Positions 1 through 48,376 of a stretch of DNA of 64,000 nt are shown piece after piece. The position numbers and the translations under genes were made by a program. Positions within the stretch are counted from its first letter, which is position 1. Every line of letters begins with the position of its first letter. The notes under the pieces are model-generated. The model ran no database searches. It was given only the letters and a program-made list of their open reading frames with translations, and had not been told where the DNA came from. Where the stretch lies: the IMG/VR virus record IMGVR_UViG_3300009703_004110, positions 1-64,000 of that record, one strand, 5' to 3'.

Positions 1-19
1 CTTTTACCGACACCCGGGT

Positions 20-54
20 TGGCACAGAGATTGCACTATGCAAGAGTCATGCCA
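20..54. promoter_or_regulatory. Double sigma54 box palindrome, copy 1
   Basis: + strand TGGCAC-AGAGA-TTGCA, 3-nt spacer, - strand TGGCAT-GACTC-TTGCA. Confidence 0.75.
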
Positions 55-96
55 GGATTCCCGGAGCAAGCCAAAGACCGAGCTTTCGCCCAGTCT

Positions 97-414
97 CTAA
101 GCCGCCAGCCTCTCAAGAGCTTGCCAGCCTCTCAGCACCTCTACCTCGGTGAAGGTGTCATCTGCCCAGCGTCCCTCGTTACAGTCCGTCAGGAAGCCCT
201 CCCAGGACTGGAGGATACCACACTCGATCCCTTCCTCCATCTGGCAGACGATCGCCTCACAGTTGACGTCCAGATCGAACGCAGCGTGGATCCAATCGTG
301 TTGGGTCGAGACGTCGTAGCTCTCATCCGTCTCGTAACCTCGGGCTGCCGCCCAAGCCTCGGAGATCGCCACCCGCTCAGCGACGGGCGGCAGCTTGAAG
401 GTTACTTCCCGCAT
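97..414 (-). CDS. Hypothetical acidic protein
   Basis: 105-aa ORF, GC-biased codons, TGATG coupling with a small upstream ORF. Confidence 0.7.
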   Translation of the reverse strand: MREVTFKLPPVAERVAISEAWAAARGYETDESYDVSTQHDWIHAAFDLDVNCEAIVCQMEEGIECGILQSWEGFLTDCNEGRWADDTFTEVEVLRGWQALERLAA

Positions 415-549
415 CAGTAGGGCGCCCCAGCCTTCTCAGCCTTGAGGGCTGCCATGTTGGCGTCCATGCTGTGCAGCGCGAGCAGGGTCATTCGGGACTC
501 CGTGGTGTACCAGAGCTTTACTGTCCGAGTTTTCTTTTTGTCCGAATGA

Positions 550-834
550 TTAGGGTCGGTAGACCGGAGAAACCATGATATACCATTCCTGCGTTAGATC
601 GTTCCACACCAGATCGGTGACGTACGAGCCGTCAGCGGTGAGCATCTCAGCGCACCAGCGGTGCCCATTCTCCCAGAACTCCTCTGGAACGATGCAGACC
701 TCTCCGGGGTAGTAGAGCACTTCCGGCCGGATCGGGTCAGCCGCGTTGGACGCATGGCCCTTGGGGACCGTAGCACAAGCGGTAAGCTGCGCCAGGATTG
801 ACAGGAAGAGCAGGAGGGTAGTGATTGTACGCAT
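550..834 (-). CDS. Putative lipoprotein
   Basis: Signal peptide MRTITTLLLFLSILAQ with lipobox LTAC; GAGG RBS upstream. Confidence 0.75.
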   Translation of the reverse strand: MRTITTLLLFLSILAQLTACATVPKGHASNAADPIRPEVLYYPGEVCIVPEEFWENGHRWCAEMLTADGSYVTDLVWNDLTQEWYIMVSPVYRP

Positions 835-991
835 GTGTTCTTATTACCTCGTCCATTTTCTTTCTGCTCAATCGTCCAGACCACGCTCAGCGCGGGTCGG
901 AGGCCAGCCGAAACCGACGATCAGAATCAGAATGAAGATGGTAGTCATACGACAGACTTACTTTCTAATCTTTCTTTCTGCCCGTGCGTGT

Positions 992-1026
992 TGGTACGCC
1001 TCTTGCATAATGCATAAAGCGTGCCA
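992..1026. promoter_or_regulatory. Double sigma54 box palindrome, copy 2
   Basis: + TGGTAC-GCCTC-TTGCA, taa, - TGGCAC-GCTTT-ATGCA. Confidence 0.75.
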
Positions 1027-1086
1027 ACTTTCTGGGGCACGACTAAGGGGAGCCGAAAGGCTCCCCGTGGGCGCACGACCCCTCTC

Positions 1087-1548
1087 TCAGAGGGGCTCGA
1101 TTTCGTAGACCGCGACGGCTTCCCCGTACTCGATGATATCGCGGAGTAGGCGGCGGTACTCTCGGCGTCCGATATCGAGGACCATCTGCATTTTGCGGTC
1201 GGTGACCTCCAACCCAACAGTCTGGCCCATCGCCTGGCACCAGGAGATACTGGCCTTGTGCTGGGAGGTCGCGGTCAGCGCCTCATTGAGCACCAGGGCC
1301 TCTTCCGTCAGGATCGGGCGCGACGGAGCGTTGGGCGTCGGGTCGGTCTTGAAGAAGAACCGGCGCAGGACGGGGCTCCAGCCGAACCGCTCCGCGAACA
1401 GGAAGTGGTAACAGTCGTGGACCTCGAATCCGTCGCCGAAGATCGGCAAGTCATCTGCGAACTGGATCCAGCTCCTGTCGTGCTCGCGAGTCTCGATGAT
1501 GGTCCGGTTACCTCGGTGATACCAGCGGACCTCGATGATACGCGCCAT
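1087..1548 (-). CDS. Stand-alone MazG C-terminal-domain-like protein
   Basis: HDCYHFLFAERFGWSPVLR...RPILTEEAL resembles the HDxxH..GWSPV.R..EE pattern of MazG_C; start moved to the Met at 1548 (GGAG RBS). Confidence 0.6.
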   Translation of the reverse strand: MARIIEVRWYHRGNRTIIETREHDRSWIQFADDLPIFGDGFEVHDCYHFLFAERFGWSPVLRRFFFKTDPTPNAPSRPILTEEALVLNEALTATSQHKASISWCQAMGQTVGLEVTDRKMQMVLDIGRREYRRLLRDIIEYGEAVAVYEIEPL

Positions 1549-1636
1549 GCAGGAAGCTCCATAGGGTGGGTTACACCCTGCACTTACCGTCTCAGTTTTC
1601 TTTTTGCTCCAGCGATTGGTCGCCCTTATCTCACGC

Positions 1637-1671
1637 TGGCATAGCAGGTGCATTATGCAAGTAGCGTGCCA
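1637..1671. promoter_or_regulatory. Double sigma54 box palindrome, copy 3
   Basis: + TGGCAT-AGCAG-GTGCA, tta, - TGGCAC-GCTAC-TTGCA. Confidence 0.75.
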
Positions 1672-1677
1672 GGTTAT

Positions 1678-1812
1678 TCAACACAAACCAATGGCGGGCT
1701 GGCCTTTTACCTGGAACCTATCTTGCACTATGCAAGGACTGTGCCAGGTTTGAAAGGCCACAGCACACCCGGAGAGGAGAACGGAGGAGAGCAGCAGGGT
1801 CAGGACTCGCAC
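1678..1812 (-). pseudogene. Short lipoprotein-like ORF, possibly a truncated remnant
   Basis: GTG start, MRVLTLLLSSVLLSGC lipobox; the frame runs straight into palindrome copy 4 and ends after 44 aa. Confidence 0.4.
1712..1746. promoter_or_regulatory. Double sigma54 box palindrome, copy 4
   Basis: + TGGAAC-CTATC-TTGCA, cta, - TGGCAC-AGTCC-TTGCA. Confidence 0.7.
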
Positions 1813-1861
1813 GATGACTTTCCTATGTAGTATGATGATTGGGCACCCTTTCGTTACCCGT

Positions 1862-2371
1862 CTAGTTTTCTTTCTGAGCGTAGAGGTTGGACACCAGCAC
1901 AAGGATCAGGAAGCAACAGTGCTCCCACAACTCCATCCGCTCCCCGATCAGGATGTCCCCCATGCAGAACATGGCAAAGACCATCGCAGATGCCCTATGG
2001 GCCTTGTCCAGGGCCCCTCGGGTCGGCGGGTAGCCCCGGAAGGTGCGGAGAAGCAGGATCAGGAACCACAGGCCGATCAAACCCTCCATGGAAGCCGCTC
2101 CATAGAGCAGAGCAAGGGAGACGGAGCGCGGGGCCCCGATTCGGGCAAACATTGCCGCCATTTTGTTGTCCCGATTGACCCCATAACCCCCAGTGGTTTC
2201 CATCGGCTGAATCCGCCCGATCTCAGCCCCCTCGGCATCGTAGATCACACCAGACGACGCAAAATCGCCTTGGAGGGGCTGATAGGTCCCGTTAAAGACC
2301 TTGTCACCAGCATTCAGCAGCCAGAATCCCGCCCAAAAGGCGATCAGGAGGGTAATCCAGCTACGGTGCAT
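1862..2371 (-). CDS. Integral membrane protein (DoxX/DUF2165-like, ~4 TM)
   Basis: Four hydrophobic stretches; LLNAGDK and MEGLIG patterns. Confidence 0.6.
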   Translation of the reverse strand: MHRSWITLLIAFWAGFWLLNAGDKVFNGTYQPLQGDFASSGVIYDAEGAEIGRIQPMETTGGYGVNRDNKMAAMFARIGAPRSVSLALLYGAASMEGLIGLWFLILLLRTFRGYPPTRGALDKAHRASAMVFAMFCMGDILIGERMELWEHCCFLILVLVSNLYAQKEN

Positions 2372-2465
2372 TTTACGTCCAGAAAGAGGGTATTAAAGGC
2401 TCATTACGACCCTGTTTTTCTTTTTGAGCGAAATGAGGCTCTTATTTGGGGCTATTATCCGCCCT

Positions 2466-2500
2466 TGGCATAGGCCTTGCATACTGCATAAATCATACCA
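2466..2500. promoter_or_regulatory. Double sigma54 box palindrome, copy 5
   Basis: + TGGCAT-AGGCC-TTGCA, tac, - TGGTAT-GATTT-ATGCA. Confidence 0.75.
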
Positions 2501-2784
2501 ACTTTGGTCGATAATAGGGTCGAACTGAGGGGATGGGAGGCCCTTATCGTGGCTTATAACCCGGTTAGGGTCAGAAGGTGAACAACGTTTTGTAAATAAA
2601 AAAACAATAGTTGTTTTGTTTTGTTCGTTTTGTAACAGTGCAAGTTGTTTTTGTTTTTTACAAATAGTTACTTGACAGCTTGACCCGAGACGCGATTTAT
2701 ACGGCTTATACGGCTCTGGCGCGAGTTGGCGACTGGCGTGGAAGTTGCGCACCGCTGGAGGTATTTTATCTTTTCTGAAAACCC

Positions 2785-2871
2785 ATCCATTGGTTTAAAG
2801 CTTATTCATTAACTCCTCAATCTTATCCATTGGATCTAAAGCAGTTCCATACGAAAAAACTTATCCATTGG
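2785..2871 (+). repeat. Three direct repeats of ATCCATTGG in a non-coding region
   Basis: Copies at 2785, 2825 and 2863 (CTTATCCATTGG at 2822 and 2860); degenerate copies near 2801, 2884 and 2900. Confidence 0.75.
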
Positions 2872-3015
2872 TTCTTCAGGCACATCCATCAGAAAGCATA
2901 TCCCTTGGGTCCACATATGCAAAAGAATGAACATTATCTTTACATATCACAATAGACTTATGGACTTGATAAATGAAGAAAACAAAACCATGGTATACCC
3001 TATGGTTTTTATATT

Positions 3016-3312
3016 TCACTTCTTCTTTTTACCCCTCGCCTTTAGCAGGGACCATGACTCAATGAATTGCGCTTTCTCTCGTGGACTCAGACTGTTTAAC
3101 ACCTTATCGGTTTTAACTTGCATCAGATAAGCTTTAGACCCTTTAGTCACATACTCAGTCCACATCCTTACGGGGGACTCTTGATATACTACAAGGGCAA
3201 AATCTTTTACCTTATAAACCCTTACTTCTACATCCTGTGCTATTAGGAATTCTAGATCTAGTTCTGGTGCATGTTTTAGGAATGGAATTCTATTATACTT
3301 ATCAACTACCAT
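3016..3312 (-). CDS. Hypothetical protein
   Basis: 98-aa ORF in a run of minus-strand genes. Confidence 0.65.
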   Translation of the reverse strand: MVVDKYNRIPFLKHAPELDLEFLIAQDVEVRVYKVKDFALVVYQESPVRMWTEYVTKGSKAYLMQVKTDKVLNSLSPREKAQFIESWSLLKARGKKKK

Positions 3313-3335
3313 ATCAAATTCTCTCAGAAATAATA

Positions 3336-3653
3336 TTAGCCGGCTTCGTTCTTAATCAGCAGATCAAGATGGTAAAGCAGCGGCTCCTTTTGTTCATTTG
3401 GGAGGGACTCAAACACTTCCTCAAAAGAAACTTGGGTGTGAGGATCCGCTTGCTCCATATTCTTATCTTGAAATATGGCTTCGCGGCGGAACCATCTTGG
3501 GCCTTCGGAAGTGGAAAATAACCTATAATTTGGTGAGCCCTTTATGGTCATCAGCCCGGGGATTATGCCTTGATTCATTAAAACATTAACCAATGTGTCC
3601 AAATGTCCTGGATATGTCATATCAAACTCGGTTAATGCAAACGTTCTTGTCAT
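3336..3653 (-). CDS. Hypothetical protein with FEEV..LxYHLD motif
   Basis: C-terminal SFEEVFESLPNEQKEPLLYHLDLL shared with other ORFs in the window. Confidence 0.75.
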   Translation of the reverse strand: MTRTFALTEFDMTYPGHLDTLVNVLMNQGIIPGLMTIKGSPNYRLFSTSEGPRWFRREAIFQDKNMEQADPHTQVSFEEVFESLPNEQKEPLLYHLDLLIKNEAG

Positions 3654-3674
3654 GGTTGAATTGTACCTTGGAAG

Positions 3675-4070
3675 TTATCTTTGGTTCAAGAAAAAGATTA
3701 AATTAACTTGCTCCTCTTTGGTGCAACGCTCAAATAGCGTCTTCATCAAGAGTGGCTGATAGATCCTTCCATCGCGTTCCTTTAGCGCACCGGACGCTAT
3801 CTCTGCTTCCTCAAGAAGGCTTTTATTCCCCTCGGTATCAATAAACATAAGATATTGTCCTTGGGCCGCATGGTTTGCTTTCAGCTCTATGTAAGCTCCC
3901 TCCGGTTCCTTTAAAGCATGCCGTCTTCTCTTTGGCGCCATTAAACATTCCGGCCAGTCCATATAATTCGATAACCAAAGATCTTCCATTGCATTAAAGT
4001 CGTTTAAATTAACTTTGCTTAATAACTCCGCGCCCATCACCAAGTGCATGTGACTCCAGGCGTTCATCAT
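3675..4070 (-). CDS. Hypothetical protein
   Basis: Start moved to MMNAWS at 4070 (GGAG RBS, ATGA overlap with the upstream frame). Confidence 0.65.
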   Translation of the reverse strand: MMNAWSHMHLVMGAELLSKVNLNDFNAMEDLWLSNYMDWPECLMAPKRRRHALKEPEGAYIELKANHAAQGQYLMFIDTEGNKSLLEEAEIASGALKERDGRIYQPLLMKTLFERCTKEEQVNLIFFLNQR

Positions 4071-4420
4071 GGTGGAAGCTCCAACCCCTCTTGGCTTGAA
4101 ACGGTAATGGTTCCCACCGGATAATTTAGAGATTTTCCTCCTGGGATAGCCCGGATATTTCGTTTCAGCTTTGCCATCTTTTGCTCCCCGGCGTACATCC
4201 ATCTGATAGCCTTATAAATATAGTACCCTCGACTCCAAACCCGGTCATAAAAACCTTCGAAATTTCTTTCACGATGACAATTATGGTTGTTTAGCCGATA
4301 TCTAAATTCGGCGTCATAAATTTTAGTGCTTTGTCGTTGATAATCAAGTAGAATATAAAGATAAGTTGATGAGCCATCTAAGTGTCCTGTTTTATATATA
4401 AAACTATCAACTGCATTTAT
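4067..4420 (-). pseudogene. 118-codon open frame without a canonical start at its 5' end
   Basis: Stop-free frame (INAVDSFIYKTGHLDG...GLELPP*) whose TGA overlaps the next ATG; not in the ORF track. Confidence 0.45.
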
Positions 4421-4496
4421 TCATGATTATCAATAATTTATAAGATTTATTTATACGTGATACCTGATAAATTTAGATCGTAATTTATACGGTCGT

Positions 4497-4859
4497 TTGA
4501 CCCTTCGGATTTATATGACCAAGTCTTGTCCAATATCTATAGCTGAATTACCGGAACCTAACCAGGTTTTTGAGGCTATAGACGGCAATATTGTGGTAGT
4601 TTATCGACCTGATTTATTCTACATGATGTCCGCCAGAATGGAACTCGCTCCGGCCTTTAGCTTTCATGAGAAGCCGATTATTGAGGACCAAGAGTCTGAC
4701 AGGTATTTAATGCATGTTGCTACCGCTGATTTCGTAGAGGGTCGCTTCTATATCTTACTAACGGTTGGCTTTGGTCATATAGAGGTCGTATTAGATGCAA
4801 CTACTGTTAAGATGCATTTAGAAAAGGAGTTTGTAAGTAACTATGATATTCAAAAATAA
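4497..4859 (+). CDS. Hypothetical protein
   Basis: 120-aa ORF overlapping the next gene; start may be the Met at 4515. Confidence 0.6.
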   Translation: MTLRIYMTKSCPISIAELPEPNQVFEAIDGNIVVVYRPDLFYMMSARMELAPAFSFHEKPIIEDQESDRYLMHVATADFVEGRFYILLTVGFGHIEVVLDATTVKMHLEKEFVSNYDIQK

Positions 4860-5730
4860 AAAACTAACTCCCGAACATTTAATGGTTTATAATCAGATGC
4901 CTGAGCGAGCGCAGATGGCAATGAATAATATACGGCCCGGATGGTCGTATCGCGGACCTATACGTAACGGATTGATATCTATCAACTTCTATGAGTGGGA
5001 GCAGATCAAGCGTAATGAGTCTAGTGGCCGCTGGGCTTCCAAGCCCAAGTCTCATCTGTCAAAAGAACTTGACTTTATTGATGTTAGTGAAAAGAATAAG
5101 CTTGATAATTGGATGTATTGCATTGAATATAATAATGAAATTCATCATCATTTCAATACCGCAGATTCCACAAATACTTATCAGTCCGGAGATATGCAGT
5201 TACCAAGGCATGCTATGTTTATCAGTGATAATATCAAACGCTTACTAGAGTTATCCAATGAGAACCTTCTTGCCAGTAGCACTAAGATAATGGATGTTAA
5301 TCTGATTAGAAATGCCCCAGAAAAGTCTATAACTTTTATTACCGAAGATGATGAGGAGTTCGTTGGCACAGGTTCCACTTTAAATATAGCCGCCATTATG
5401 CTCTTTGGTAAGACCTTTAAATACAAGTATATGATGGAGCGTCCTTCTATATCTCAATTCAAATGTGACGATATTTCTTTTGATACTTTAATTAGAGGGC
5501 AGAATACTGTTGTTATGAAAGGCATAAAATCTTGGTATGCGCACATTAGAAATATGAATCTTGATAACTATACTGTTTTTATGTCAAGAAAGATATTTCA
5601 AGAAATACAGGATGAGATAGGGGATAACTTTAATTATCTTGGATGTTATAGCTTCGAAGAGGGCGAATATCATGCAGTAGAAGAGGATAATGGTCTCGGA
5701 ATAATCAACGGACTGTTCGATAGCTTTTAA
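4843..5730 (+). CDS. Hypothetical protein
   Basis: 295-aa ORF with AAGGAG upstream. Confidence 0.75.
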   Translation: MIFKNKKLTPEHLMVYNQMPERAQMAMNNIRPGWSYRGPIRNGLISINFYEWEQIKRNESSGRWASKPKSHLSKELDFIDVSEKNKLDNWMYCIEYNNEIHHHFNTADSTNTYQSGDMQLPRHAMFISDNIKRLLELSNENLLASSTKIMDVNLIRNAPEKSITFITEDDEEFVGTGSTLNIAAIMLFGKTFKYKYMMERPSISQFKCDDISFDTLIRGQNTVVMKGIKSWYAHIRNMNLDNYTVFMSRKIFQEIQDEIGDNFNYLGCYSFEEGEYHAVEEDNGLGIINGLFDSF

Positions 5731-5784
5731 TGATGATTATCATCATTAAAAAAGGCCCCGCAGGAGAAATCCCGTGAGGCCTTT
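5725..5784. terminator. Bidirectional terminator region between convergent genes
   Basis: Perfect 13-bp inverted repeat 5725-5751 followed by an AAAGGCC...GGCCTTT stem 5751-5784. Confidence 0.7.
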
Positions 5785-5801
5785 GTTCCAGCTTATTTGG
5801 C

Positions 5802-6749
5802 TTATACGTCGAAGTCGATTTCTCCACCAGTATAAGCTATCTCTCCCTGCCACTCAAATGGCCCAAGACTTAATGCGCTGTATTGACCGGCATATTGAGA
5901 GATGCCTGGATACTGAGACGGCCAGTCAATGCCGGCGACAATCTCTTCCAGAGACTCTTTGTGCTTGGCCGTTAGACCGGGGTTCTCTTGCTTCCCACCT
6001 GATGGCTCCGCAACTACTGAGCCAGGAACAGGCTTAGCATTGGTGTCCAACTTAAAGGCAAACTGATAGTTCTTAGCCTGACCTTCAGTTACTTCGTATG
6101 GTAAGCCGAAGCCTTCCGCATTATCATAAAACGGAGACTGCTCGCCAAGCGCTATATATCTCTTATAGAAGTCTTGCTGCTCTCTTGCTGGGTCAGCTGC
6201 TGCAACTACAGTTTTTTTTTCAGCCGATTTGAGAAGTTCATCTATAGTGAGCATGGCTTCAGCCACCGGAGAGCTTCCAGGCTCGCCAGAGAGTCCCTCT
6301 ACACCCCAAGCTGTATATGGCTTAGGCTCCTCTCCTCTCATTTCAGAATAGACGTCTCCACCCAAGTGTAACTGCTGAAGACTTTGTACAATCGGTTCTA
6401 ATTGAGCCAACTGAGCCTTTTCTTCTGGTCCGCCCCATCCCTCATCGATCATATCCTTAAGAGCCTGAACACCCGCCAAAAGATCTTTAACCTTTTCAGT
6501 CGCTTCTGCCTCTAGGTCTCCGCCGCTTTCGCCAGCTAACGGCTCTTCGCCCGGAAGCCCCTCTTCAAGAGGCTCCTCTCCGAATGCTTCTACGGCTGCT
6601 TCGTCCATGCTATCAAAAGGCGTCTGTGAGGCTGTATCGTCCCACTCATCTAGCGCCTTCTTAGCTAACCGATCTGCTATATCCGCTTCTTTGGTAAGTC
6701 CTGCGGCATCCAGATCGTTAGCCAACTTTAATAATTTAACGTGAATCAT
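5802..6749 (-). CDS. Acidic protein with the shared N-terminal leader; putative virion protein
   Basis: KLLKLANDLDAAGLTKEADIADRLAKKA leader; GGAG RBS. Confidence 0.75.
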   Translation of the reverse strand: MIHVKLLKLANDLDAAGLTKEADIADRLAKKALDEWDDTASQTPFDSMDEAAVEAFGEEPLEEGLPGEEPLAGESGGDLEAEATEKVKDLLAGVQALKDMIDEGWGGPEEKAQLAQLEPIVQSLQQLHLGGDVYSEMRGEEPKPYTAWGVEGLSGEPGSSPVAEAMLTIDELLKSAEKKTVVAAADPAREQQDFYKRYIALGEQSPFYDNAEGFGLPYEVTEGQAKNYQFAFKLDTNAKPVPGSVVAEPSGGKQENPGLTAKHKESLEEIVAGIDWPSQYPGISQYAGQYSALSLGPFEWQGEIAYTGGEIDFDV

Positions 6750-6759
6750 TATATCTCCA

Positions 6760-7458
6760 TCACTTTAATCTAGTTAGATTTTTTAGTCGTTTATCTGGAT
6801 TACGCCAGTCCATTCTGGACAGCCACCATTCAACATAAGCCTCTTTATCGAGACCAAAATCAGCAAAGTAAGCGTGCTCCCACATATCAAGTGCCGCAAT
6901 AGGGACACTGAAGATTGGAACACCAATTTCGTGCAGGTCAATGACGTCGATGTAAATCATCTTTGTCTTAATGCAATAGTTAACCAGTACCCAACCATTA
7001 CGAGTAAGCTTAGCTGCTCGGGTCAAATCTTTGGTAAAGTCTTTGGCACTTCTAATATATAAGTCACCAAGGTTACCGCTAAGAAACTTAGCTTTTTCCA
7101 TTGGCGTTGGTCTGCTATCATAAACATCTTCAAAATACATTTCATGAAGAAAAACTGCGTTCTCTGCATTGGAGGTACCACGTTGTACTTCGCGAAGCTT
7201 GCCGTAGGCTGGAGTATCTTTCTCATTAGAAGAAAGCAGAGTTTTCTTCTTTTCTTTGGTCAAAGACTCTAGTGCTTTCTGGTACATCTCTGCTAATTCA
7301 TGATGAGCATTGACTGTACTTTGTTGTACACCGCTCTTATGCATTTCAACCTTGGCAGTTTTACGCATATATGTATCAAGAATGTCCACCTCGCTGGACA
7401 TTCCTTGCTCGTCAATACGTGCCAAAGCGTGCAATACTTCTTTAAGATTTTCGCTCAT
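6760..7458 (-). CDS. Fe/Mn superoxide dismutase family protein with leader
   Basis: LDMWEHAY (DxWEHAY) and NAVFLHEMYF motifs; start moved to MSENLK at 7458 (GAGG RBS). Confidence 0.85.
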   Translation of the reverse strand: MSENLKEVLHALARIDEQGMSSEVDILDTYMRKTAKVEMHKSGVQQSTVNAHHELAEMYQKALESLTKEKKKTLLSSNEKDTPAYGKLREVQRGTSNAENAVFLHEMYFEDVYDSRPTPMEKAKFLSGNLGDLYIRSAKDFTKDLTRAAKLTRNGWVLVNYCIKTKMIYIDVIDLHEIGVPIFSVPIAALDMWEHAYFADFGLDKEAYVEWWLSRMDWRNPDKRLKNLTRLK

Positions 7459-7693
7459 ATTTGAACCTCTACTATGTTTATCTTTATTAGTAAAACCAAT
7501 CAAACCATTTATACTTGACGGAACATCCCTTTGCTGGTTAAAAGCCTGGGACGCGATAGGCTTCCCCCGCCCGTTAAAGGCTCCTGGGGCCCCTCAGCAC
7601 TCCCGTATAATAAAACTAAGGCCCTCGTACTGGAGCGGGATACAAGTCACAGTCAGCGGACCTTACAGGGCCTGCATATCAATGCCAAATTGA

Positions 7694-10567
7694 TTACTCC
7701 TCTTCTTCATTGTAAACCCAGGTCTCTTCGGGCAGGTAGATTGTTTCCGATGGATCTTCATCTTCATCACTTGGTAGGAATTCGGATGGAGTTATCCCCT
7801 TCGGATGTCTATTTGAAGGATCAAAGTATACTGGTGTATCACCTCTGTATCCCAGGTTTCCACTGTGAACATCTGTATTATCGGAGATTAACTGAAATAT
7901 CATTGATCGAACAATATCTGGCAACCAGCCCTTGGGAAGAGAAAGTCTTCTTTCTGCTTCTTTAAATACAGGCATAACTTCACCGTATAGACTTGAGCCA
8001 ATAAACTCGCCCACTAAGCCGTTAGTAAAAGTTTCTATATCTTTCATATCAGAATCAGGACCTGGTTTATTAGGTGCCCTCTGGAATGCACCACTGACAA
8101 CAACCTCATTTTGAGAATTTCTTTTGCCACCAAAATATACATTTAGCTTTCCAAAGGCTTTCTTAAATTCTCTCAATAATGACTTAGTTATATTAGACTC
8201 TTCTTTGTCTTCTATGTTCAGATATTTAGCCAAGTCTTTTAGCTGGTCATCATAAGATTTAACCATACTTCTGATTGGATTTAATTTCTCGATTACAACC
8301 CACGACATATTTCTTAGCTTCTTAACATCATATGGCTTCTTAGCTAATGGCACATCGAATATGCCATAGTCGAAAACCATTAGATTGTACTTGCTTCCCT
8401 TCTCTGGATCATGAACAGCTGCCGCCTGTTCTTTGTAATAGTCTAGGTCTTTATCATTAGACATAAGCTTAATCACACGATCATCTTCTGTAGTCCAAGC
8501 ATCGGCATAGCTACCAGATCCAAGAAAGTTTGTAGGCTTGTATCGTTCTAAGACGTCGGCGTTTCTGTTTAAGAAGTCCTTTACCCAGATCTCTTTACTT
8601 TCCCTGCTCTTCTCACCCTTAAACGAAGAAAACATTTCGCCTACTAAATTACCTATCACGGTTTCAGCGGAAAATATCTTACCGTACTCGCCAAACTCTC
8701 CCACTCTTTGTGGAAGTAAGTGCTCTAATCCGTATTGCTTGGCAAGCTCGGGAGTTAATATAGTCTCATCATAAGCGAAGTTTTCTCTGGCTCCATAATC
8801 TAGGTTTCTTCTGATTGGGCCAAGGGCGCTAGATAGAATAGTTTTAAGTCTATTTAGCTTCGCAGTCTTATCCCAGTCTCTAATTTCTGTATATTCTTCT
8901 GGTGCCTCATAAGCTGGAGACGGATTGTATGCATCAAAGAAGACCGGTGTAGTTCCGCGATAGCCCATGTTTTCTGGCTTAGTATCTCGGTGACCTCTAG
9001 TTAGAGACTTGAAGTTAGAAATCATAAAATCTTCAATCCATGATTTTTCTAGGCCATAGTGCTCTATGCCAGCGACTCTTAGTCTTTCTACTGAAAAATA
9101 CTGCTTGCGTCTCGAAGGCCTCTTCATCCATCTTTCGAAATGATGATTAATTCTCTTATCAACTAAGAATTTCGCAATATCTTCGTCAGATGTACTTCTC
9201 GGGATCTCGTCAGAGCCAGAAAGTATTTTGCTCATTGCTCTGGCAAAATCTGATACATAGCCAAGAAGATGATCAAGCGTAGGCTTACCTTGATAGGGAC
9301 TAAATCCAGGCTCTAAGAACTTCCTTGGTGTCTTAAGCTCTTCTGTAACTACCCATCCAAGATCAAAATGCTCTTTCATGTTTTCTTTAATTTCGCGCCC
9401 ATCTAAGCTTAATGGAAGATCTGGCATCCTAAATGGACCAGAATCATAAACTCTAAGGTCTCTCTTATCTCCAGTCTCAGGGTCAAAGGGCACGTCCTCA
9501 AGTCTTTTATATTCTTCCAAGGCTCCGAGCCCACCAAAGATCTTAAAGACTCGTCCATCCTCTAGCTTATAAGCGTGACCATGGGCTCCTGCACCAATGC
9601 TTTCTACTGGCATATACTCTGTAAATATGTCTGAATTAATATCTATGAACCTTTCGATAAAGGCTGCCGGGTTAGTATAGTTTTGTGACAGTTTTAACAA
9701 TGGCTCGGACTGCTCGATTAAATCAAATTGTGGCATTTCACCAAATAAATCATCAGCGTCATTTTGGCCAGGACTAAACGGATCAAAAAATACGGGAGTC
9801 TCGTTTCGATATCCGAGATTCTTAGAACCCAGGGTATCTACTCGTCCTTGTAACATAGAGTACAATAAAGCAATAATGTAGTTCTTTACAGTCTTCGAGC
9901 CCTCTGGAGAATCGTAGCCTTCCGGCTGGACTTCTTCTAATGGATAGAAGGCAATGAATCCTTGGTAAATTATATCTGCTGCTTTAGCCAGATTATCGGA
10001 AGTTATTTCCTTGATAGAGTCTGGATCAAAATTATAAGTGATATAATCATAGATGTTTCGATAGAATTCATCTTCACCAATCCCACCTTGATTCGGTAAG
10101 TATTCCGTTAGAGCCCATCCTAAGAAATCCACTCCTTTTTGCTCTGGAAGCTCGAATTTACCAAAGTCATAAATCTGAATGGTAGATTGTGTAGCGGCTC
10201 CCTGATAAAGCTTGTCAGTTTCTTCCTGATAGAAGCTCATTAGTTTTGGCTCATTAAAGAGCTTCAAGACCCTGCTGTCATCAGTGAGGTAAGCTTCGCC
10301 ATCCGCACCACCTCCAAGTCGTTTAACTGGGGTATGGATAGAGAAGATGGCAGAGTTCAGATCTAGAAATTTTCCAACCCATTGTTCTGCGATATTTTCA
10401 TCCATACCCTGAAGCATACTACCGAATAAGGGCGAATTCTGCACGAGATCAAGTCCAGGCATAATGCCCGAAGATAACTTATATAATGAAACAAGCTCCT
10501 CATCAAGGGACTCTTCTGTTAAGAGCTTTCCAAGATTATATAGTTTATTTGCTATCCTCGTCTTCAC
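7694..10567 (-). CDS. Protein with three tandem protein-kinase-like domains
   Basis: Three sets of G-loop + VxK (LGGGADG/VLK, IGAGAHG/VFK, LGSGSYA/VIK), catalytic loops (VDTLGSKN, HRDTKPEN, TDVHSGN) and (F/Y)FD. Confidence 0.85.
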   Translation of the reverse strand: MKTRIANKLYNLGKLLTEESLDEELVSLYKLSSGIMPGLDLVQNSPLFGSMLQGMDENIAEQWVGKFLDLNSAIFSIHTPVKRLGGGADGEAYLTDDSRVLKLFNEPKLMSFYQEETDKLYQGAATQSTIQIYDFGKFELPEQKGVDFLGWALTEYLPNQGGIGEDEFYRNIYDYITYNFDPDSIKEITSDNLAKAADIIYQGFIAFYPLEEVQPEGYDSPEGSKTVKNYIIALLYSMLQGRVDTLGSKNLGYRNETPVFFDPFSPGQNDADDLFGEMPQFDLIEQSEPLLKLSQNYTNPAAFIERFIDINSDIFTEYMPVESIGAGAHGHAYKLEDGRVFKIFGGLGALEEYKRLEDVPFDPETGDKRDLRVYDSGPFRMPDLPLSLDGREIKENMKEHFDLGWVVTEELKTPRKFLEPGFSPYQGKPTLDHLLGYVSDFARAMSKILSGSDEIPRSTSDEDIAKFLVDKRINHHFERWMKRPSRRKQYFSVERLRVAGIEHYGLEKSWIEDFMISNFKSLTRGHRDTKPENMGYRGTTPVFFDAYNPSPAYEAPEEYTEIRDWDKTAKLNRLKTILSSALGPIRRNLDYGARENFAYDETILTPELAKQYGLEHLLPQRVGEFGEYGKIFSAETVIGNLVGEMFSSFKGEKSRESKEIWVKDFLNRNADVLERYKPTNFLGSGSYADAWTTEDDRVIKLMSNDKDLDYYKEQAAAVHDPEKGSKYNLMVFDYGIFDVPLAKKPYDVKKLRNMSWVVIEKLNPIRSMVKSYDDQLKDLAKYLNIEDKEESNITKSLLREFKKAFGKLNVYFGGKRNSQNEVVVSGAFQRAPNKPGPDSDMKDIETFTNGLVGEFIGSSLYGEVMPVFKEAERRLSLPKGWLPDIVRSMIFQLISDNTDVHSGNLGYRGDTPVYFDPSNRHPKGITPSEFLPSDEDEDPSETIYLPEETWVYNEEEE

Positions 10568-10836
10568 CTACCTGCTCTCCAGTGTCTTTTGTACCAACGT
10601 TCCATAACTATTATCGCATCTTCAATCTCAGACTCTTGCTCTTTTACTTTTTTCATGATAATCAAGACAGATTCGACTTCCTTAATTATTCGCAAGATTT
10701 GTTTGCACCGCTCCCTTTTACCCGGTATAGCCATAATGTGCGCCCACCGCGTATCCAGATTGCGCGCATAACGCATTGCGTCTGCTCGGTTTATCGGGTA
10801 TTTTATCTGATGAAGGTTCTTCATGTTGCTGGTCAC
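10564..10836 (-). CDS. Hypothetical protein
   Basis: 90-aa ORF with GTGA overlap to the kinase gene; start uncertain. Confidence 0.55.
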   Translation of the reverse strand: MTSNMKNLHQIKYPINRADAMRYARNLDTRWAHIMAIPGKRERCKQILRIIKEVESVLIIMKKVKEQESEIEDAIIVMERWYKRHWRAGR

Positions 10837-10938
10837 CAGTAAGATGTTGCGTGTTCATTTGGGCGCATCCTTTGTAATTAAATAGTACCTATCTTGCTAT
10901 CAAATATTAATAGTAATTGTTTATTAGGGAGAATATGT

Positions 10939-11451
10939 ATGTCAGAATGGCAAACATCGAAATTAAAATCGCACACAATACGAGATTTAAGTCAAAACGT
11001 ATATTCGTTTGACGAATTTATTGAATCATTAAAAGAGCACAACGAACAAGGTTATGATACCTTCGTTGGTACCGACTCACAAATTCATAAGGGCCAGATC
11101 CACATTGCAACTTGTGTAGCCTTTGTACGTAGAGATAAGCCAGACATAGGCGGAGACAGATCCGGTCAGGTATTCTACATTAAGGAGAAAATCTCGCGTA
11201 GAGATTATCCAAATCTACGCATGAGAATGATGCTAGAGGCATACAGGTCTTTAGAGGTTGCAATGGAGATAGAACAATATGTTACTGAAACTCTTAGTGT
11301 TCACCTTGATATTGGGCCTAATCCTAGGAAGTCTAAGACCTCCGCATTTAAGGTAGAGCTAACCGGCATGATCAAGGGTCAGGGCTATGAAGTAGCTATC
11401 AAGCCTGACGCTTGGTGTGCTTCCGGTGTAGCCGATCGAGTATGTCGTTAG
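10939..11451 (+). CDS. RNase H-like YkuK (DUF458) family protein
   Basis: VGTDSQ, EAYRS, VHLDIG, IKPDAWCASGVAD motifs; start at MSEWQ. Confidence 0.85.
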   Translation: MSEWQTSKLKSHTIRDLSQNVYSFDEFIESLKEHNEQGYDTFVGTDSQIHKGQIHIATCVAFVRRDKPDIGGDRSGQVFYIKEKISRRDYPNLRMRMMLEAYRSLEVAMEIEQYVTETLSVHLDIGPNPRKSKTSAFKVELTGMIKGQGYEVAIKPDAWCASGVADRVCR

Positions 11452-11474
11452 AACTGAAGTAAAATAGGTACTAA

Positions 11475-11510
11475 AAAAGGGGAAGAGAGTTTAAACTCTC
11501 TTCCCCTTTT
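11475..11510. terminator. Bidirectional rho-independent terminator
   Basis: Perfect 36-bp palindrome AAAAGGGGAAGAGAGTTTAAACTCTCTTCCCCTTTT between convergent genes. Confidence 0.9.
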
Positions 11511-11521
11511 GCTTTGTCTGA

Positions 11522-12094
11522 TTATTTCTCTTGAGATGTTTCTAATAGCTTTACCAACTCAATATAAGATGGATAGTGTGCCTTCTTAAGAAAGGATGCC
11601 AAGTGGCTCAATTTCTCCATCTTCCATGAATCAGGAAGTAGACCATGAAGTTCGCCTGGAGTCTCTGTGTGCTGTAATTGAACAAATTGAATTTTATTAT
11701 CCGGGTATTGTTCCTGAAGATAAGTAAACTCAAAGTTGTCATCATCGAAATGAAGTTCTGAGCCAATCTCTTGTAGCTTATGTGCCTTGTCATTACCTAC
11801 AAAAATTAGCTCTTTAAAGTGTTATAGCATACCATTCGCTTGTAGAAATTCGATAACTTCGACACGATTTTCTGGTGAGTCCTTTCTGCTGGTAACCATG
11901 TATAATGTAGTGCCAGCTGCAGACAAGCGTGTGATAATATCTTTGATAATCGGAGACATTCTATGTCCAGTTACTTCATAATTAGCCCAGTCTTCTGGCA
12001 CTCGATAGATGTTAAATTGCAGAGTATCATCGAAATCAAAGCTCGCCATAGCGGGCGGGCTGGCCATAATTGATTCGATTAACTCTGCGCTCAT
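11522..12094 (-). pseudogene. HAD-superfamily phosphatase interrupted by an in-frame TAA at 11822-11824
   Basis: FDFDDTL (motif I) and VTSR (II) precede the stop; the same frame continues with NDK (III) and LHFDDD (IV) to a TAA at 11522. Confidence 0.75.
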
Positions 12095-12096
12095 TT

Positions 12097-12432
12097 TTAC
12101 TTTCCTGGCGCGAAGCTCATACCGCACCCACAGGATTTAGAGCCTGGAACATTAAACTTAAATCCACCATTAACAATATCGTCTGAAAAATCTATCTCCA
12201 TTCCATTTAGATAAAGATATGATTTTCTATCAACTACAATTGACTCTTCTGTCTCTTGATCTACGACAACCAGTCTATCTCCTTCTGAAATCTGGCTGGT
12301 TATTTCTACTTCATACATAAATCCAGAGCAACCTCCTCCACGTAAGGCAACCTTTAAGTGGCCGTCCGGCATTTGAAGTTGATTTCTGAGGCTAGCGATT
12401 TTTGCTAGCGCATTAGCTGTAGCTGTGATCAT
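12097..12432 (-). CDS. iscA: A-type Fe-S cluster carrier (IscA/HesB family)
   Basis: GGGCSGF and SCGCGMSF motifs. Confidence 0.92.
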   Translation of the reverse strand: MITATANALAKIASLRNQLQMPDGHLKVALRGGGCSGFMYEVEITSQISEGDRLVVVDQETEESIVVDRKSYLYLNGMEIDFSDDIVNGGFKFNVPGSKSCGCGMSFAPGK

Positions 12433-12734
12433 TATTCTATTCCGTGTAGTCTCTCCGCCACTCTAAGTAAAATTAGGTAGCCTAGAAGATCTTTTGTTAT
12501 ATCCTCACTGTTTATAGCATTATTATTAGATACATGGTCATTTGCCATACGAGATAATTTATCATCAATTCGACATTTTATTTGTTCTACTGGAGACGCT
12601 TTTGAAAAGATTCTTTTCGGATTAATTGCCGAGTTTCCATAAGCTTGATTCTTCTCGATTAACAAATCTTTAACACCATCGCATTCTTCCGCAATTAGTG
12701 CCTGCACCTCATCTAATGTAAACTTTTTACTCAT
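12432..12734 (-). CDS. Nucleotide-modification-associated domain protein (DUF1599-like)
   Basis: KNQAYGNSA, RIDDKLSR, DLLGYLIL. Confidence 0.75.
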   Translation of the reverse strand: MSKKFTLDEVQALIAEECDGVKDLLIEKNQAYGNSAINPKRIFSKASPVEQIKCRIDDKLSRMANDHVSNNNAINSEDITKDLLGYLILLRVAERLHGIE

Positions 12735-13230
12735 CCGTTTCCTCCATTATTTCTTTCATCATTTGGCCTTTGTAATTTTCAGAATATAAAACTGAATATA
12801 CAAAGTTTTTAACTCTTTCATCTCCAATGTCAATTACCTCAGAATTATATATTTCGTCTATATGTAATAAGGAAAGATGCTTGTTTTTCTGAATTATCGG
12901 ACCGTAAGCCTGAACAGCCTTTGGCGATAGCTTTACCAAGATGTGCTTTACTCTATCATAATCCTTTTCATCTTCATTAAACTCAAAGTCGGGATCATCT
13001 GTTTTGAGATCTACCAGGGCCAAGCTCCCATATTCATTGGGAGGGAGTTTGATATAATTGTATATTGTCCTTCCAAGATATTCATCATACTTCATATTAG
13101 AGGTTTTTGAAAACCTTGGTATATCAAAGGAGGGCGTCGCCTCTCCTTTGTTTATTGTTAATATGTATTCACCAAATATAAAGTAAATATATGTCAGCTC
13201 TGCGCCGAACAGTATAATCAGCTCGTCCAT
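12727..13230 (-). CDS. Hypothetical protein
   Basis: 167-aa ORF in an operon-like run. Confidence 0.7.
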   Translation of the reverse strand: MDELIILFGAELTYIYFIFGEYILTINKGEATPSFDIPRFSKTSNMKYDEYLGRTIYNYIKLPPNEYGSLALVDLKTDDPDFEFNEDEKDYDRVKHILVKLSPKAVQAYGPIIQKNKHLSLLHIDEIYNSEVIDIGDERVKNFVYSVLYSENYKGQMMKEIMEETDE

Positions 13231-13233
13231 ATT

Positions 13234-13629
13234 TTATCCTTTAGCTATGTATTCTTTTAATGTGCTTACCAACCATTTTCCTAGAGGAATGAAGTCATAA
13301 TTATCAAGCTCTTCTATCGTAATCCAGGCCATATCAGAACTCTCATTATTAATTTTAGCTTCTCCTTCGGATTTTTTTGTTCCATAAAAGTAAAGAATTT
13401 TATCTGACTGCTCAATTTGTCCGAAATAATCAAGCTTATTTTCATTAGCCCATAGGTTAGCTTCTTCTTCTAACTCTCTTGCGGCAGCTTGAAAAGGATA
13501 TTCGTACTTATCTACTTCTCCACCTGGAAAGTTCCATAGTCCTGGCGCGGTTGTCCAATCAGCTCTTTTTAATATCAGAAATTTATCATTACGTACTGGT
13601 ATCAGTATCGCCACTTTTCTTTTGGTCAT
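13234..13629 (-). CDS. NUDIX hydrolase
   Basis: Nudix box GGEVDKYEYPFQAAARELEEEANL. Confidence 0.92.
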   Translation of the reverse strand: MTKRKVAILIPVRNDKFLILKRADWTTAPGLWNFPGGEVDKYEYPFQAAARELEEEANLWANENKLDYFGQIEQSDKILYFYGTKKSEGEAKINNESSDMAWITIEELDNYDFIPLGKWLVSTLKEYIAKG

Positions 13630-13852
13630 ATGCTAACCTCTTTTGCATTGTTTCGTAAAGCTCTGTTATAACAGAGCTTCCTGTCGTGGTGAATAAAAAC
13701 GGAAAAACGCCGTGAACTAATAGAACAACGGCGGTTGATGCTAATATGAATGAAGTTCTGACGCAACACCATAAATGTTCCAGATATGTTTCTCCGACAG
13801 ATTCTGGATGTTTATTAAAGTCTTCTTTTATTTTCTTGCAACAGCCTTTCAT
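13589..13852 (-). CDS. DUF6356-like small membrane protein
   Basis: HPESVGETYLEH and VHGVFPFLFTTTGS. Confidence 0.75.
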   Translation of the reverse strand: MKGCCKKIKEDFNKHPESVGETYLEHLWCCVRTSFILASTAVVLLVHGVFPFLFTTTGSSVITELYETMQKRLAYDQKKSGDTDTST

Positions 13853-14385
13853 CCTATGGCTCCTTCTAAGTTTACTACTCCAAGTCTATACAACTTTCTT
13901 TTTAAGGTAGGGCTCTTTGTATCTGTATATATTTGATACATAGATCCTACTTCTTCAAACTTATATAGTTTATTAACCAAAGATAAATGCGTTAAAGCAG
14001 AGACGCAATCTTGATATCTCGTAGCCAACTCAACATATGGCATTGGCCTTTTTCCAAGCTTAGCTACTTGATAATATGCTGCCGAGCCCATATCTGTATA
14101 ATATGAATGATTGTTTATGCTATCTGGAAAGTATCCTGAAATAAACAAACTGTAATCTCCAAGCTGCCTTAGTCTTTGCATCCTCTCTATTCTACCAGGT
14201 GCTCCTTTTGCTTCTAGATATAAATCTACCAAATAGGTCTTTTCTCCTGCCGCCCATACCGCTTCTGAGGTTATAGAATTGGTCATTAAGTCAACAAGGT
14301 AAGATAATGATCTTGGGGCTATTGGCCCTCGCCTGTCTAGAATATGAGACAGTTCTTCTCTAAAAGAAGAAGCTGGTTCTTGCAT
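13849..14385 (-). CDS. Conserved uncharacterised bacterial-type protein
   Basis: LGDYSLFISGYFPDS...YYTDMGSAAY pattern recalls a conserved bacterial hypothetical family. Confidence 0.65.
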   Translation of the reverse strand: MQEPASSFREELSHILDRRGPIAPRSLSYLVDLMTNSITSEAVWAAGEKTYLVDLYLEAKGAPGRIERMQRLRQLGDYSLFISGYFPDSINNHSYYTDMGSAAYYQVAKLGKRPMPYVELATRYQDCVSALTHLSLVNKLYKFEEVGSMYQIYTDTKSPTLKRKLYRLGVVNLEGAIG

Positions 14386-36915: not shown

Positions 36916-36917
36916 TA

Positions 36918-38822: not shown

Positions 38823-38823
38823 T

Positions 38824-48316: not shown

Positions 48317-48376
48317 GCGTTCTCCATACCTAGATTTTACTCTAGGCACGAAGAAATGCTTGAATTTATATGTAAA

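Follow-up and report, generated by a model that had tools for sequence, protein, structure and literature searches.

A 35-bp element of paired, opposed sigma54-type promoter boxes in front of small-gene units in a jumbo phage island and in other uncultured phages

The analyses presented here indicated that a 35-bp element made of two opposed sigma54-type promoter boxes sits in front of the small-gene units of a GC-rich island in a jumbo phage of at least 420 kb. The same paired design recurred in many uncultured phages but was almost never found in bacterial genomes, and hence it looks like an undescribed phage-specific control element, with a reader that can only be inferred on present evidence. 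We started with a 64,000-nucleotide stretch of DNA (here called the window), which is the start of IMG/VR contig 3300009703_004110 (positions 1 to 64,000 of record IMGVR_UViG_3300009703_004110). A preliminary description, made from the sequence alone, had noted five copies of the element in the first 2.5 kb of the window and none in the AT-rich 61 kb, with invariant spacing between the boxes and variable N5 spacers. This observation was confirmed, and it was understated.

The pattern TGGNAY-N5-KTGCA-N3-TGCAW-N5-RTRCCA matched exactly at the five positions listed in Table 1, and the N5 spacers differed between copies. When 2 mismatches were allowed, no match was found elsewhere in the 64 kb, and 100 dinucleotide-preserving shuffles gave 0 matches; thus, chance was rejected. 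Good single half-sites (at most 1 mismatch to TGGCAC-N5-TTGCW) in bases 1 to 2600 were all located inside the five elements, and half-site matches in the AT-rich remainder were few and scattered. The first 2.5 kb was 57-58% GC, compared to about 38% for the rest of the window, and the plausible genes in this segment were on the minus strand. However, five is only the number of copies that fits in the window, which begins 19 nt before a copy. A 420,521-bp ENA assembly of the same phage (ena:ERZ27251152:k141_1786444) continued the island for about 25 kb and carried 22 copies.

Table 1. Features of the GC-rich segment at the start of the 64,000-nucleotide window
Position	Strand	Feature	Supporting observation
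2466..2500	-	Palindrome copy; first unit of the island, directly after the AT-rich non-coding region; gene-facing half reads on the minus strand	Exact pattern match; followed on the minus strand by the leader at 2404-2426 and the ATG at 2371; copy 196574 of the ENA record
1712..1746	-	Palindrome copy; upstream member of a tandem pair 75 bp apart	Exact pattern match
1637..1671	-	Palindrome copy; upstream of the 153-aa gene	Exact pattern match; leader at 1583-1606, ATG at 1548
992..1026	-	Palindrome copy; preceded on the minus strand by a GC-rich hairpin	Exact pattern match; the 60 nt upstream fold at -29 kcal/mol
20..54	-	Palindrome copy at the contig start; its downstream unit lies outside the window	Exact pattern match; two assemblies, the IMG/VR contig and a Logan contig, begin here
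2404..2426	-	Leader motif CAAAAAGAAAAA-N6-CGTAAT	
1853..1876	-	Leader motif with no palindrome of its own	Overlaps the end of gene 1862-2371
1583..1606	-	Leader motif CAAAAAGAAAAC-N6-GGTAAG	
957..980	-	Leader motif variant CAGAAAGAAAGA-N6-AGTAAG	
843..866	-	Leader motif with no palindrome of its own	Before the 94-aa gene
517..540	-	Leader motif	Before the 25-aa and 105-aa coupled ORFs
1047..1066	-	GC-rich hairpin (8-bp stem, 4-nt loop); looks like a terminator but lacks a U-run	Between the stop of gene 1087-1548 and palindrome 992-1026
1862..2371	-	Gene, 169 aa, predicted membrane protein	Weak DoxX_3 match
1087..1548	-	Gene, 153 aa	Weak MazG_C-like match
868..948	-	Short ORF, 26 aa, hydrophobic peptide	Read from the sequence, so uncertain
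550..834	-	Gene, 94 aa	Lipoprotein-like signal sequence
97..414	-	Gene, 105 aa; a 25-aa ORF at 414-491 is coupled to it by an overlapping TGATG	Identical protein on the 420-kb ENA contig

To examine whether the junction between the island and the AT-rich core was an assembly chimera, we compared independent assemblies. One Logan contig spanned window positions 1-6000 at even depth, the ENA contig spanned the junction, and a second sample held both parts; a chimera was therefore rejected. DNA comparisons identified no relatives among GenBank phages, and only distant protein hits, to Thermus phages and huge-phage metagenome records, were found. No RNA family or tRNA was identified. Of the two largest unknown proteins, which were considered as possible polymerase subunits, the 957-aa protein looked kinase-like and the 1385-aa protein gave nothing. 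An L12-like protein was uninformative with regard to the host.

Next, we examined the arrangement of the copies in the 420-kb assembly. All 22 copies had a centre gap of 3 and the same orientation relative to the genes, and both halves were kept, with a gap of 3, in 21 of 21 good pairs. The usual layout was a hairpin (about half of the copies), the palindrome, a leader (CARAAAGAAAAY-N6-RGTAAK) 13-52 nt downstream, a Shine-Dalgarno site, and an ATG, followed by one or a few small genes. Twelve of the 22 copies were preceded by a hairpin of -23 kcal/mol or stronger. A leader followed most of the copies, and the 60 nt after each copy were weakly structured (mean -8.2 kcal/mol, compared to -15.8 kcal/mol for the island background). 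In the window units, the gene-facing half was located about 70-130 nt before the start codon, whereas the opposed half had no gene to drive. Sigma70-type promoters in the island were at chance level (6 found, compared to 3.5 +/- 1.9 expected), as were U-run terminators.

As for the individual halves, the -24 GG and -12 GC dinucleotides were at the canonical spacing within TGGCAC-N5-TTGC(A/T) in both halves of all 5 window copies and all 22 genome copies. Both halves fit YTGGCACR-N4-TTGCA, with 0.95 mismatches for the gene-facing half and 1.27 mismatches for the opposed half. Positions that the search left free also followed the sigma54 consensus: across 68 other viral copies, position 4 was C in 87%, position 7 was a purine in 90%, position 8 was a purine in 69%, and position 0 was T in 48%. 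Only the gene-facing half had the A-rich -31 to -28 stretch (A fraction 0.48 compared to 0.18), which was often AAAGT as at E. coli glnAp2. In addition, the same half-site pattern picked out the E. coli pspA, glnAp2, zraP, and zraS promoters.

To examine how widely the paired form is distributed, we scanned a collection of viral sequences and a collection of bacterial genomes. Facing pairs were found at 69 loci with a gap of 3 and 53 loci with a gap of 5 in the viral collection, compared to 3 loci for a gap-9 control, an over-representation of about 20-fold relative to the spacing control, by which chance was likewise rejected. In contrast, bacterial genomes held 7 loci in 596 Gb. At least 12 other jumbo contigs shared the hairpin-palindrome-leader-gene layout. 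In a syntenic 395-kb relative, the centre gap was 5 (7 pairs) or 4 (1 pair), while half-sites and leader stayed the same; in a 353-kb contig, gaps of 2, 3, and 4 occurred within one genome. The half-site was nearly invariant across unrelated phages spanning 32-65% GC. Lone half-sites at promoter-like positions occurred in other phage contigs, and an abundant group of uncultured phages of about 35 kb had 9-10 half-sites in 250 bp of non-coding DNA. A large terminase subunit gene was located within the flank of 15 of the 69 gap-3 loci, which we estimate is about what chance would give for phage genomes of about 40 kb.

We also looked for a protein that might act on the element, because a search for RpoN or enhancer-binding proteins had been proposed as a check on the preliminary description. 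No RpoN or enhancer-binding homologue was found in the window, in 39 kb of further island, or in about 1.3 Mb of palindrome-bearing loci, and no ELFG-x3-GAFTGA signature was found on any palindrome-bearing contig, including 13 jumbo contigs. An alignment-based scan and the GAFTGA-signature scan of the viral collection found 112-113 loci, none on a palindrome contig. RpoN hits in GenBank "phage" records looked like host DNA filed under phage names. No conserved upstream activator site was seen at the 22 copies. An all-against-all comparison of ORFs around the copies, in which only partial genomes were included, found no shared DNA-binding family.

The interpretation offered in the preliminary description was partly supported by these results. 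It had identified each half as a sigma54 promoter consensus, stated that only the minus-strand box had genes to drive, and placed the element in the GC-rich part only, and these points held. It had also proposed a mutually exclusive sigma54 switch, a decoy array that titrates host RpoN holoenzyme, or an operator for a dimeric phage protein with an RpoN-box-like domain, and none of the three could be confirmed or eliminated.

The explanation that we tentatively favor is that the 35-bp elements are the repeated promoter modules of a variable accessory-gene island. In this view, the hairpin would close the previous unit and the gene-facing half would most likely recruit host RNA polymerase carrying sigma54, so that the island would be transcribed through a holoenzyme separate from the sigma70 form. 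The opposed half places its -12 box 3 bp from the first and overlaps the first half's melting and start region; therefore, a polymerase could sit in only one orientation at a time. The opposed half would either throttle the unit or be needed by a lineage-specific factor that bridges the two halves. The sequence, copy number, geometry, position, orientation, phylogenetic spread, virus specificity, and lack of hairpin covariation were established by our analyses. That sigma54 holoenzyme is the reader, that the element fires as a promoter, and what the second half does are inferences from DNA sequence, as only DNA runs from the subsurface metagenome held the phage and no RNA run was listed. The lone half-sites fit a monomeric asymmetric reader, and viral contigs that encode 235-aa activators with no DNA-binding domain, each followed by an ordinary single sigma54 promoter, show that other phages do use sigma54. 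However, no phage-encoded activator was found on the palindrome-bearing contigs. Moreover, the ordinary sigma54 promoters, including those next to phage activators, were not palindromic, and the paired form was essentially absent from bacteria; thus, sigma54 alone does not explain the second half. The centre gap, which was fixed at 3 here but differed in the syntenic relative, points to a phage-specific partner.

A bolder form of this idea, which we consider unlikely but which remains possible, is that facing pairs of sigma54 elements with -12 boxes 2-5 bp apart are a phage-specific promoter architecture. It would let lytic and jumbo phages that carry no enhancer-binding protein run whole accessory-gene islands through the host's sigma54 polymerase, with the second half, or a small lineage-specific phage factor bridging the halves, replacing or modulating the usual ATP-dependent activator. 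This would be an orthogonal transcription channel unknown in cellular genomes.

A serious rival, although a less likely one, is that the element is an operator for a phage-encoded dimeric or bridging DNA-binding protein. Each subunit would read two major grooves one helical turn apart (outer box TGGCAY, inner box TTGCA), the resemblance to sigma54 promoters would be mimicry or coincidence, and the real promoter would be the lineage-specific leader, read by a phage polymerase or sigma factor. The dyad symmetry, the retention of both halves, the gap that is fixed at 3 in this phage and is 5 or 4 in its syntenic relative while half-sites and leader stay the same, and the lack of an identified sigma54 activator are consistent with this idea. 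In addition, every gene had the leader, including genes without a palindrome, and the leader changed between lineages as a co-evolving promoter would. In contrast, no candidate regulator was shared by palindrome-bearing phages in the loci examined, the near-invariance of the half-site across unrelated phages fits a universal host factor better, and free positions matched the extended sigma54 consensus. Lone half-sites and the mixed gaps of the 353-kb contig argue against a rigid dimer.

It is unlikely that the element is primarily a recombination or shuffling junction with any promoter activity secondary, as in the promoter-early stem-loop (PeSL) cassettes of T4-like phages, in which repeated units bound gene cassettes and promote their gain, loss, and rearrangement (PMC2839356, PMC4122927). 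This idea is compatible with the favored explanation rather than opposed to it. A composite hairpin-promoter-leader repeat bounds small ORFs of unknown function in a compositionally distinct region next to core genes that are syntenic with the 395-kb relative, and assemblies break at the copies. Only 6 of 58 island ORFs had a homologue in about 49 kb of relatives' islands, and two shared genes were in a different order, but the relatives compared were distant (core proteins 28-46% identical) and gene turnover could not be told from divergence. The conserved stretches are short and interrupted (6 + 5 nt per half), which is poor substrate for homologous recombination, and no recombinase was linked to the element. 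The features of an integron attC cassette array were not seen: the boxes are TGGCAY and TTGCA rather than RYYYAAC ... GTTRRRY cores, and no integrase-type Pfam family appeared among the genes called on the ENA loci that carry the island.

It is also unlikely that the element is merely a sink, in which arrays of high-affinity sites on the replicating phage genome would soak up host sigma54 or its holoenzyme and blunt sigma54-dependent host responses without serving as promoters. Site density is high (44 half-sites in 25 kb here, as well as the arrays of the 35-kb group), sigma54 closed complexes are stable and silent without an activator, and no activator was found. In the jumbo phages, however, the sites sit at promoter positions, one per gene unit, with a constant orientation and an A-rich upstream extension on the gene-facing half only, and a sink would need neither. 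Finally, a DNA cruciform, a hairpin promoter of the N4 virion-polymerase type, or an RNA stem-loop such as a processing site is very unlikely: although the inner boxes could form a 5-bp stem with a 3-5 nt loop and the observed gaps of 2-5 resemble hairpin loop sizes, symmetric variable positions in 89 gap-3 and 47 gap-5 copies showed no excess of Watson-Crick pairing (for example, pair 6/30 paired in 46 of 89 copies compared to 44.6 expected, and the N5 positions paired slightly less than expected), the N5 spacers would leave a 5x5 internal loop, and no Rfam family matched.

Sigma54 promoters are regarded as strictly asymmetric, activator-dependent cellular elements, phage use of sigma54 is barely documented, and full-text literature searches found no description of paired sigma54 sites in phages. 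The paired form described here organises a hypervariable island of at least 22 units in a jumbo phage and in its relatives. If sigma54 polymerase is the reader, this is a new way for phages to partition transcription and a natural test bed for how the -12 region controls activator dependence. If the reader is a phage protein, it is an unknown regulator whose specificity copies a host sigma factor. Either way, the motif is a cheap marker for the accessory or host-takeover islands of uncultured jumbo phages.

Each half of the element shares with sigma54-dependent promoters such as E. coli glnAp2, pspA, and zraP, and with the nif consensus CTGGYAYR-N4-TTGCA, the sequence TGG(C/T)A(C/T)R-N4-TTGCA, the exact GG-to-GC spacing, and a pyrimidine before TGG, and the gene-facing half shares the A-rich stretch. 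The elements differ in that they always occur here as two opposed copies with the -12 boxes 3 bp apart, in that position -11 is always A, giving TGCA, and in that neither an enhancer-binding protein gene nor an upstream activator site was found. In the case of the phage-encoded minimal enhancer-binding proteins, seen on other viral contigs such as L131, the promoters are single with TTGCT at -12 and sit right after the activator gene; none is palindromic or shares a contig with the palindromes, but they show that uncultured phages do exploit host sigma54. Palindromic operator arrays of phage repressors, such as the lambda OR/OL triplets, also have dyad symmetry, and in the 35-kb phage group three tandem copies lie between divergent operons. 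The element described here, however, is 35-37 bp with four boxes, its half-site is conserved across unrelated phages, lone halves exist, and no cognate regulator gene was found in the loci compared. Like the PeSL units in the hyperplastic regions of T4-like phages (PMC2839356, PMC4122927), the units described here are short composites of a stem-loop and a putative promoter that are repeated many times and flank small ORFs of unknown function in a variable region set among conserved core genes, although recombination at the units is not shown here. PeSLs carry sigma70 early promoters, whereas the promoter-like part in this island is a sigma54-type palindrome.

Our analysis confirmed the observation made in the preliminary description. 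All five 35-bp elements were present at the stated coordinates, 20-54, 992-1026, 1637-1671, 1712-1746, and 2466-2500, and matched the pattern TGGNAY-N5-KTGCA-N3-TGCAW-N5-RTRCCA exactly, and no further matches were found in the 64 kb even when two mismatches were allowed. Furthermore, 100 shuffles of the sequence yielded no match. Every good sigma54-type half-site in bases 1-2600 belonged to one of the five elements, and the AT-rich remainder contained only a few scattered half-site matches. The segment carrying the elements was 57-58% GC, compared to about 38% for the rest of the window, and its plausible genes, which included some very short ORFs, were all located on the minus strand.

The window showed only the edge of the feature. 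It corresponds to the first 64 kb of IMG/VR contig 3300009703_004110 (332 kb), which begins 19 nt before a copy of the element. A Logan contig begins at the same place, indicating that assemblers break at this repeat. In contrast, a 420,521-bp ENA assembly carries the same genes and continues. Walking along this assembly showed that the GC-rich region runs for about 25 kb, with the GC fraction decaying from about 0.62 to about 0.45, and that it holds 22 copies when at most 3 mismatches are allowed. All 22 copies have a center gap of 3 and the same orientation relative to the genes, and their spacing is 590-970 bp in the dense part and sparser further on. The junction between this island and the AT-rich core is real: one contig spans window positions 1-6000 at even depth, and a second subsurface sample holds identical pieces of both parts. 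The GC contrast might reflect host-derived genes or recombination-linked GC bias. The non-coding stretch between the core genome and the island is AT-rich and contains T-rich runs and four to five iteron-like repeats of (A/C)TCCATTGG; it could be an origin, a packaging site, or a boundary element.

Next, we examined the anatomy of a unit. Read in the direction of the genes, 12 of the 22 copies were preceded by a strong GC-rich hairpin that lacked a U-run. The palindrome came next and, for most copies, was followed 13-52 nt further on by a composite leader, CARAAAGAAAAY-N6-RGTAAK, and then by a Shine-Dalgarno site and the start codon. The 12-nt core of the leader matched only in the island, apart from scattered one-mismatch hits. 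The leader also preceded genes that have no palindrome of their own, and it may be a promoter for a phage-encoded polymerase or sigma factor, or an RNA-level signal. The 60 nt after each palindrome were much less structured than the island background (-8.2 versus -15.8 kcal/mol), and sigma70-type promoters and U-run terminators were at chance level in the island. The island genes are small, and many encode predicted membrane proteins or lipoproteins. The Pfam hits were an L12-like protein, an RF-1 domain protein, a rhomboid, a pilin-like N_methyl protein, a weak OmpA match, and ArdC. A further motif, GGCGGCAAAAG-N-TT(G/T)AC, recurred near distal palindromes of this phage (locus L081, about 5700-14100) and seven times in a 335-kb phage locus (L038), whereas the 395-kb relative discussed below has GGGGAGAAAAGATT instead. 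The coordinates of the island and of other features in the window are listed in the following table.

Coordinates of features in the window and in other loci mentioned in the text
Location	Strand	Feature
Window 1-2530; locus L077, 7900-20318; locus L081		Island, 57-62% GC beside a 38% GC core
Window 97-414	-	Plausible gene
Window 550-834	-	Plausible gene
Window 1087-1548	-	Plausible gene
Window 1862-2371	-	Plausible gene
Window 517-540	-	Leader
Window 843-866	-	Leader; gene without a palindrome of its own
Window 957-980	-	Leader
Window 1583-1606	-	Leader
Window 1853-1876	-	Leader; gene without a palindrome of its own
Window 2404-2426	-	Leader
Window 1678-1812	-	Possible 44-aa lipoprotein-like ORF with a GTG start, which would read through palindrome 1712-1746; uncertain as a gene
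Window 2530-3010		AT-rich non-coding stretch; iteron-like repeats at about 2780-2900
Window 6760-12734		Region syntenic with genes flanking the island of the 395-kb relative
Window 7694-10567		957-aa protein; weak kinase-like signals, including T7-kinase-like clusters in the protein atlas
Window 26747-29125, 29511-32675, 45851-48349		Three genes with intein or LAGLIDADG insertions: a PIN-PhoH ATPase, a B12-type ribonucleotide reductase, and a UvsW-like helicase
Window 33763-38861		SpoVR, DUF444-like, and PrkA (YeaG) gene triad
Window 40914-42401, 56386-57966		Two free-standing HNH-type homing endonuclease genes
Window 49003-50424		473-aa protein; weak PhuZ tubulin match in PHROGs
Locus L131, 3971-4720		235-aa enhancer-binding protein, AAA+ domain only
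Locus L207, 3500-3720		Array of sigma54-type half-sites

To characterize the two halves, we compared them with the sigma54 consensus. Both halves fit YTGGCACR-N4-TTGCA, with an average of 0.95 mismatches for the gene-facing half and 1.27 for the opposed half. Only the gene-facing half has an A-rich stretch at -31 to -28 (A fraction of 0.48 versus 0.18), which is often AAAGT, the sequence found at E. coli glnAp2. The same 16-nt pattern, with at most one mismatch, recovered the E. coli pspA, glnAp2, zraP, and zraS promoters in loci fetched for this purpose. In 68 independent viral copies, the positions left free by the search also followed the sigma54 consensus. The center triplet is directional, as TAG occurred 8 times and its reverse complement CTA once. 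A hairpin was ruled out because symmetric variable positions paired no more often than expected under independence in 89 gap-3 and 47 gap-5 copies, and the N5 spacers paired slightly less than expected. Thus, by this analysis, the halves are two independent duplex recognition sites.

We then determined how the facing pairs are distributed. In viral contigs, facing pairs were found at 69 loci with gap 3 and at 53 loci with gap 5, compared to 3 loci with the control gap of 9. In 596 Gb of bacterial and archaeal genomes, facing pairs with gap 3 were found at 7 loci, and two of these seven hits are short MAG contigs that have many sites and look like phage DNA. At least 12 other jumbo contigs (210-480 kb) carry multiple copies in the same layout of hairpin, palindrome, lineage-specific leader, and gene; in these lineages, the leaders are CTCCCATTCAC, or CCCATC followed by a TAAT-like box. 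In a 480-kb contig (L009) and a 395-kb contig (L294), the copies again sit in a GC-rich island inside an AT-rich genome. The 395-kb contig is a relative of this phage: its flanking genes are syntenic with part of the window, its leader is of the same family, and it has a comparable AT-rich stretch before its first palindrome. However, the pairs at its orthologous island have gap 5 (7 pairs) or gap 4 (1 pair). The gap is nearly uniform within genomes but differs between lineages, although one 353-kb phage mixes gaps 2, 3, and 4.

Similar half-sites were observed in other contexts. An abundant uncultured phage group of about 35 kb, in which more than 600 contigs share the large terminase subunit gene (terL), has a non-coding region 1.1-1.5 kb upstream of terL. 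In L207, a locus from this group, and in several close relatives (L188, L198, L211, and L213), this region lies between divergent operons and holds arrays of 9-10 sigma54-type half-sites, which include three tandem gap-5 pairs (37-bp palindromes) with a 47-bp period, plus lone halves. All of the lone halves point to the leftward small-gene operon, and the terminase operon has its own sigma70-type promoter. Lone halves at promoter-like positions were also frequent on a MAG contig, L074. Thus, as inferred from sequence, the 16-nt half is a functional unit in its own right, as expected for a monomeric, asymmetric reader such as a sigma factor.

To examine which protein might read the element, we searched for RpoN and enhancer-binding homologues. 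None was found in the window, in the further island, or in about 1.3 Mb of palindrome-bearing loci. Several GenBank records filed as phages, such as the Listeria, Enterococcus, and Acinetobacter "phage" fragments, contain full-length host rpoN, but they look like host DNA deposited under phage names. Phages can use sigma54, since 112-113 viral loci encode activators. Among these are 235-aa forms that consist of the AAA+ domain only and lack a DNA-binding domain (L131 and about 20 similar loci, L122-L135 and L155), each of which is followed within about 25 nt by a perfect single sigma54 promoter (TGGCACGAAGGTTGCT), forming a compact phage sigma54 module. However, none of the activator-encoding contigs carries the palindrome, and none of the palindrome contigs, including 13 jumbo ones, carries the GAFTGA signature. 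The closest phage relatives of the SpoVR, DUF444-like, and PrkA (YeaG) triad are in Thermus phages and huge-phage metagenome records; the E. coli homologues belong to the nitrogen-starvation response, which would be a possible thematic link to sigma54.

The position and orientation of the copies, the lack of sigma70-type sites above chance level, and the conservation across unrelated phages make a cis-regulatory element at the promoter position very likely. The exact and extended match to the -24/-12 consensus, together with the lone halves, makes sigma54 holoenzyme the best candidate reader, although we consider this only somewhat more likely than not. Three facts are not explained by sigma54 alone and keep a phage-encoded bridging or dimeric factor as a serious rival: the opposed half is always kept, the gap is fixed within a lineage, and no activator was found in the sequences searched. 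A decoy role fits the dense non-coding arrays of the roughly 35-kb phages better than it fits this island. The interpretation in the preliminary description was partly supported: each half matches the sigma54 -24/-12 consensus, and only the gene-facing half has genes to drive, whereas the three mechanisms that it had proposed, a mutually exclusive sigma54 switch, a decoy for host RpoN holoenzyme, or an operator for a dimeric phage protein, all stay possible. The sequence, geometry, and distribution of the element were established directly by our searches, whereas its regulatory role, its reader, and its mechanism are inferred from sequence alone.

Taken together, these results indicated that the element is real, widespread, and virus-specific, and our literature searches found no description of it. 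The element is built from a known kind of promoter box. The overall layout parallels the PeSL terminator/promoter cassettes of T4-like hyperplastic regions (PMC2839356, PMC4122927), but with a sigma54-type palindrome in place of a sigma70 early promoter.
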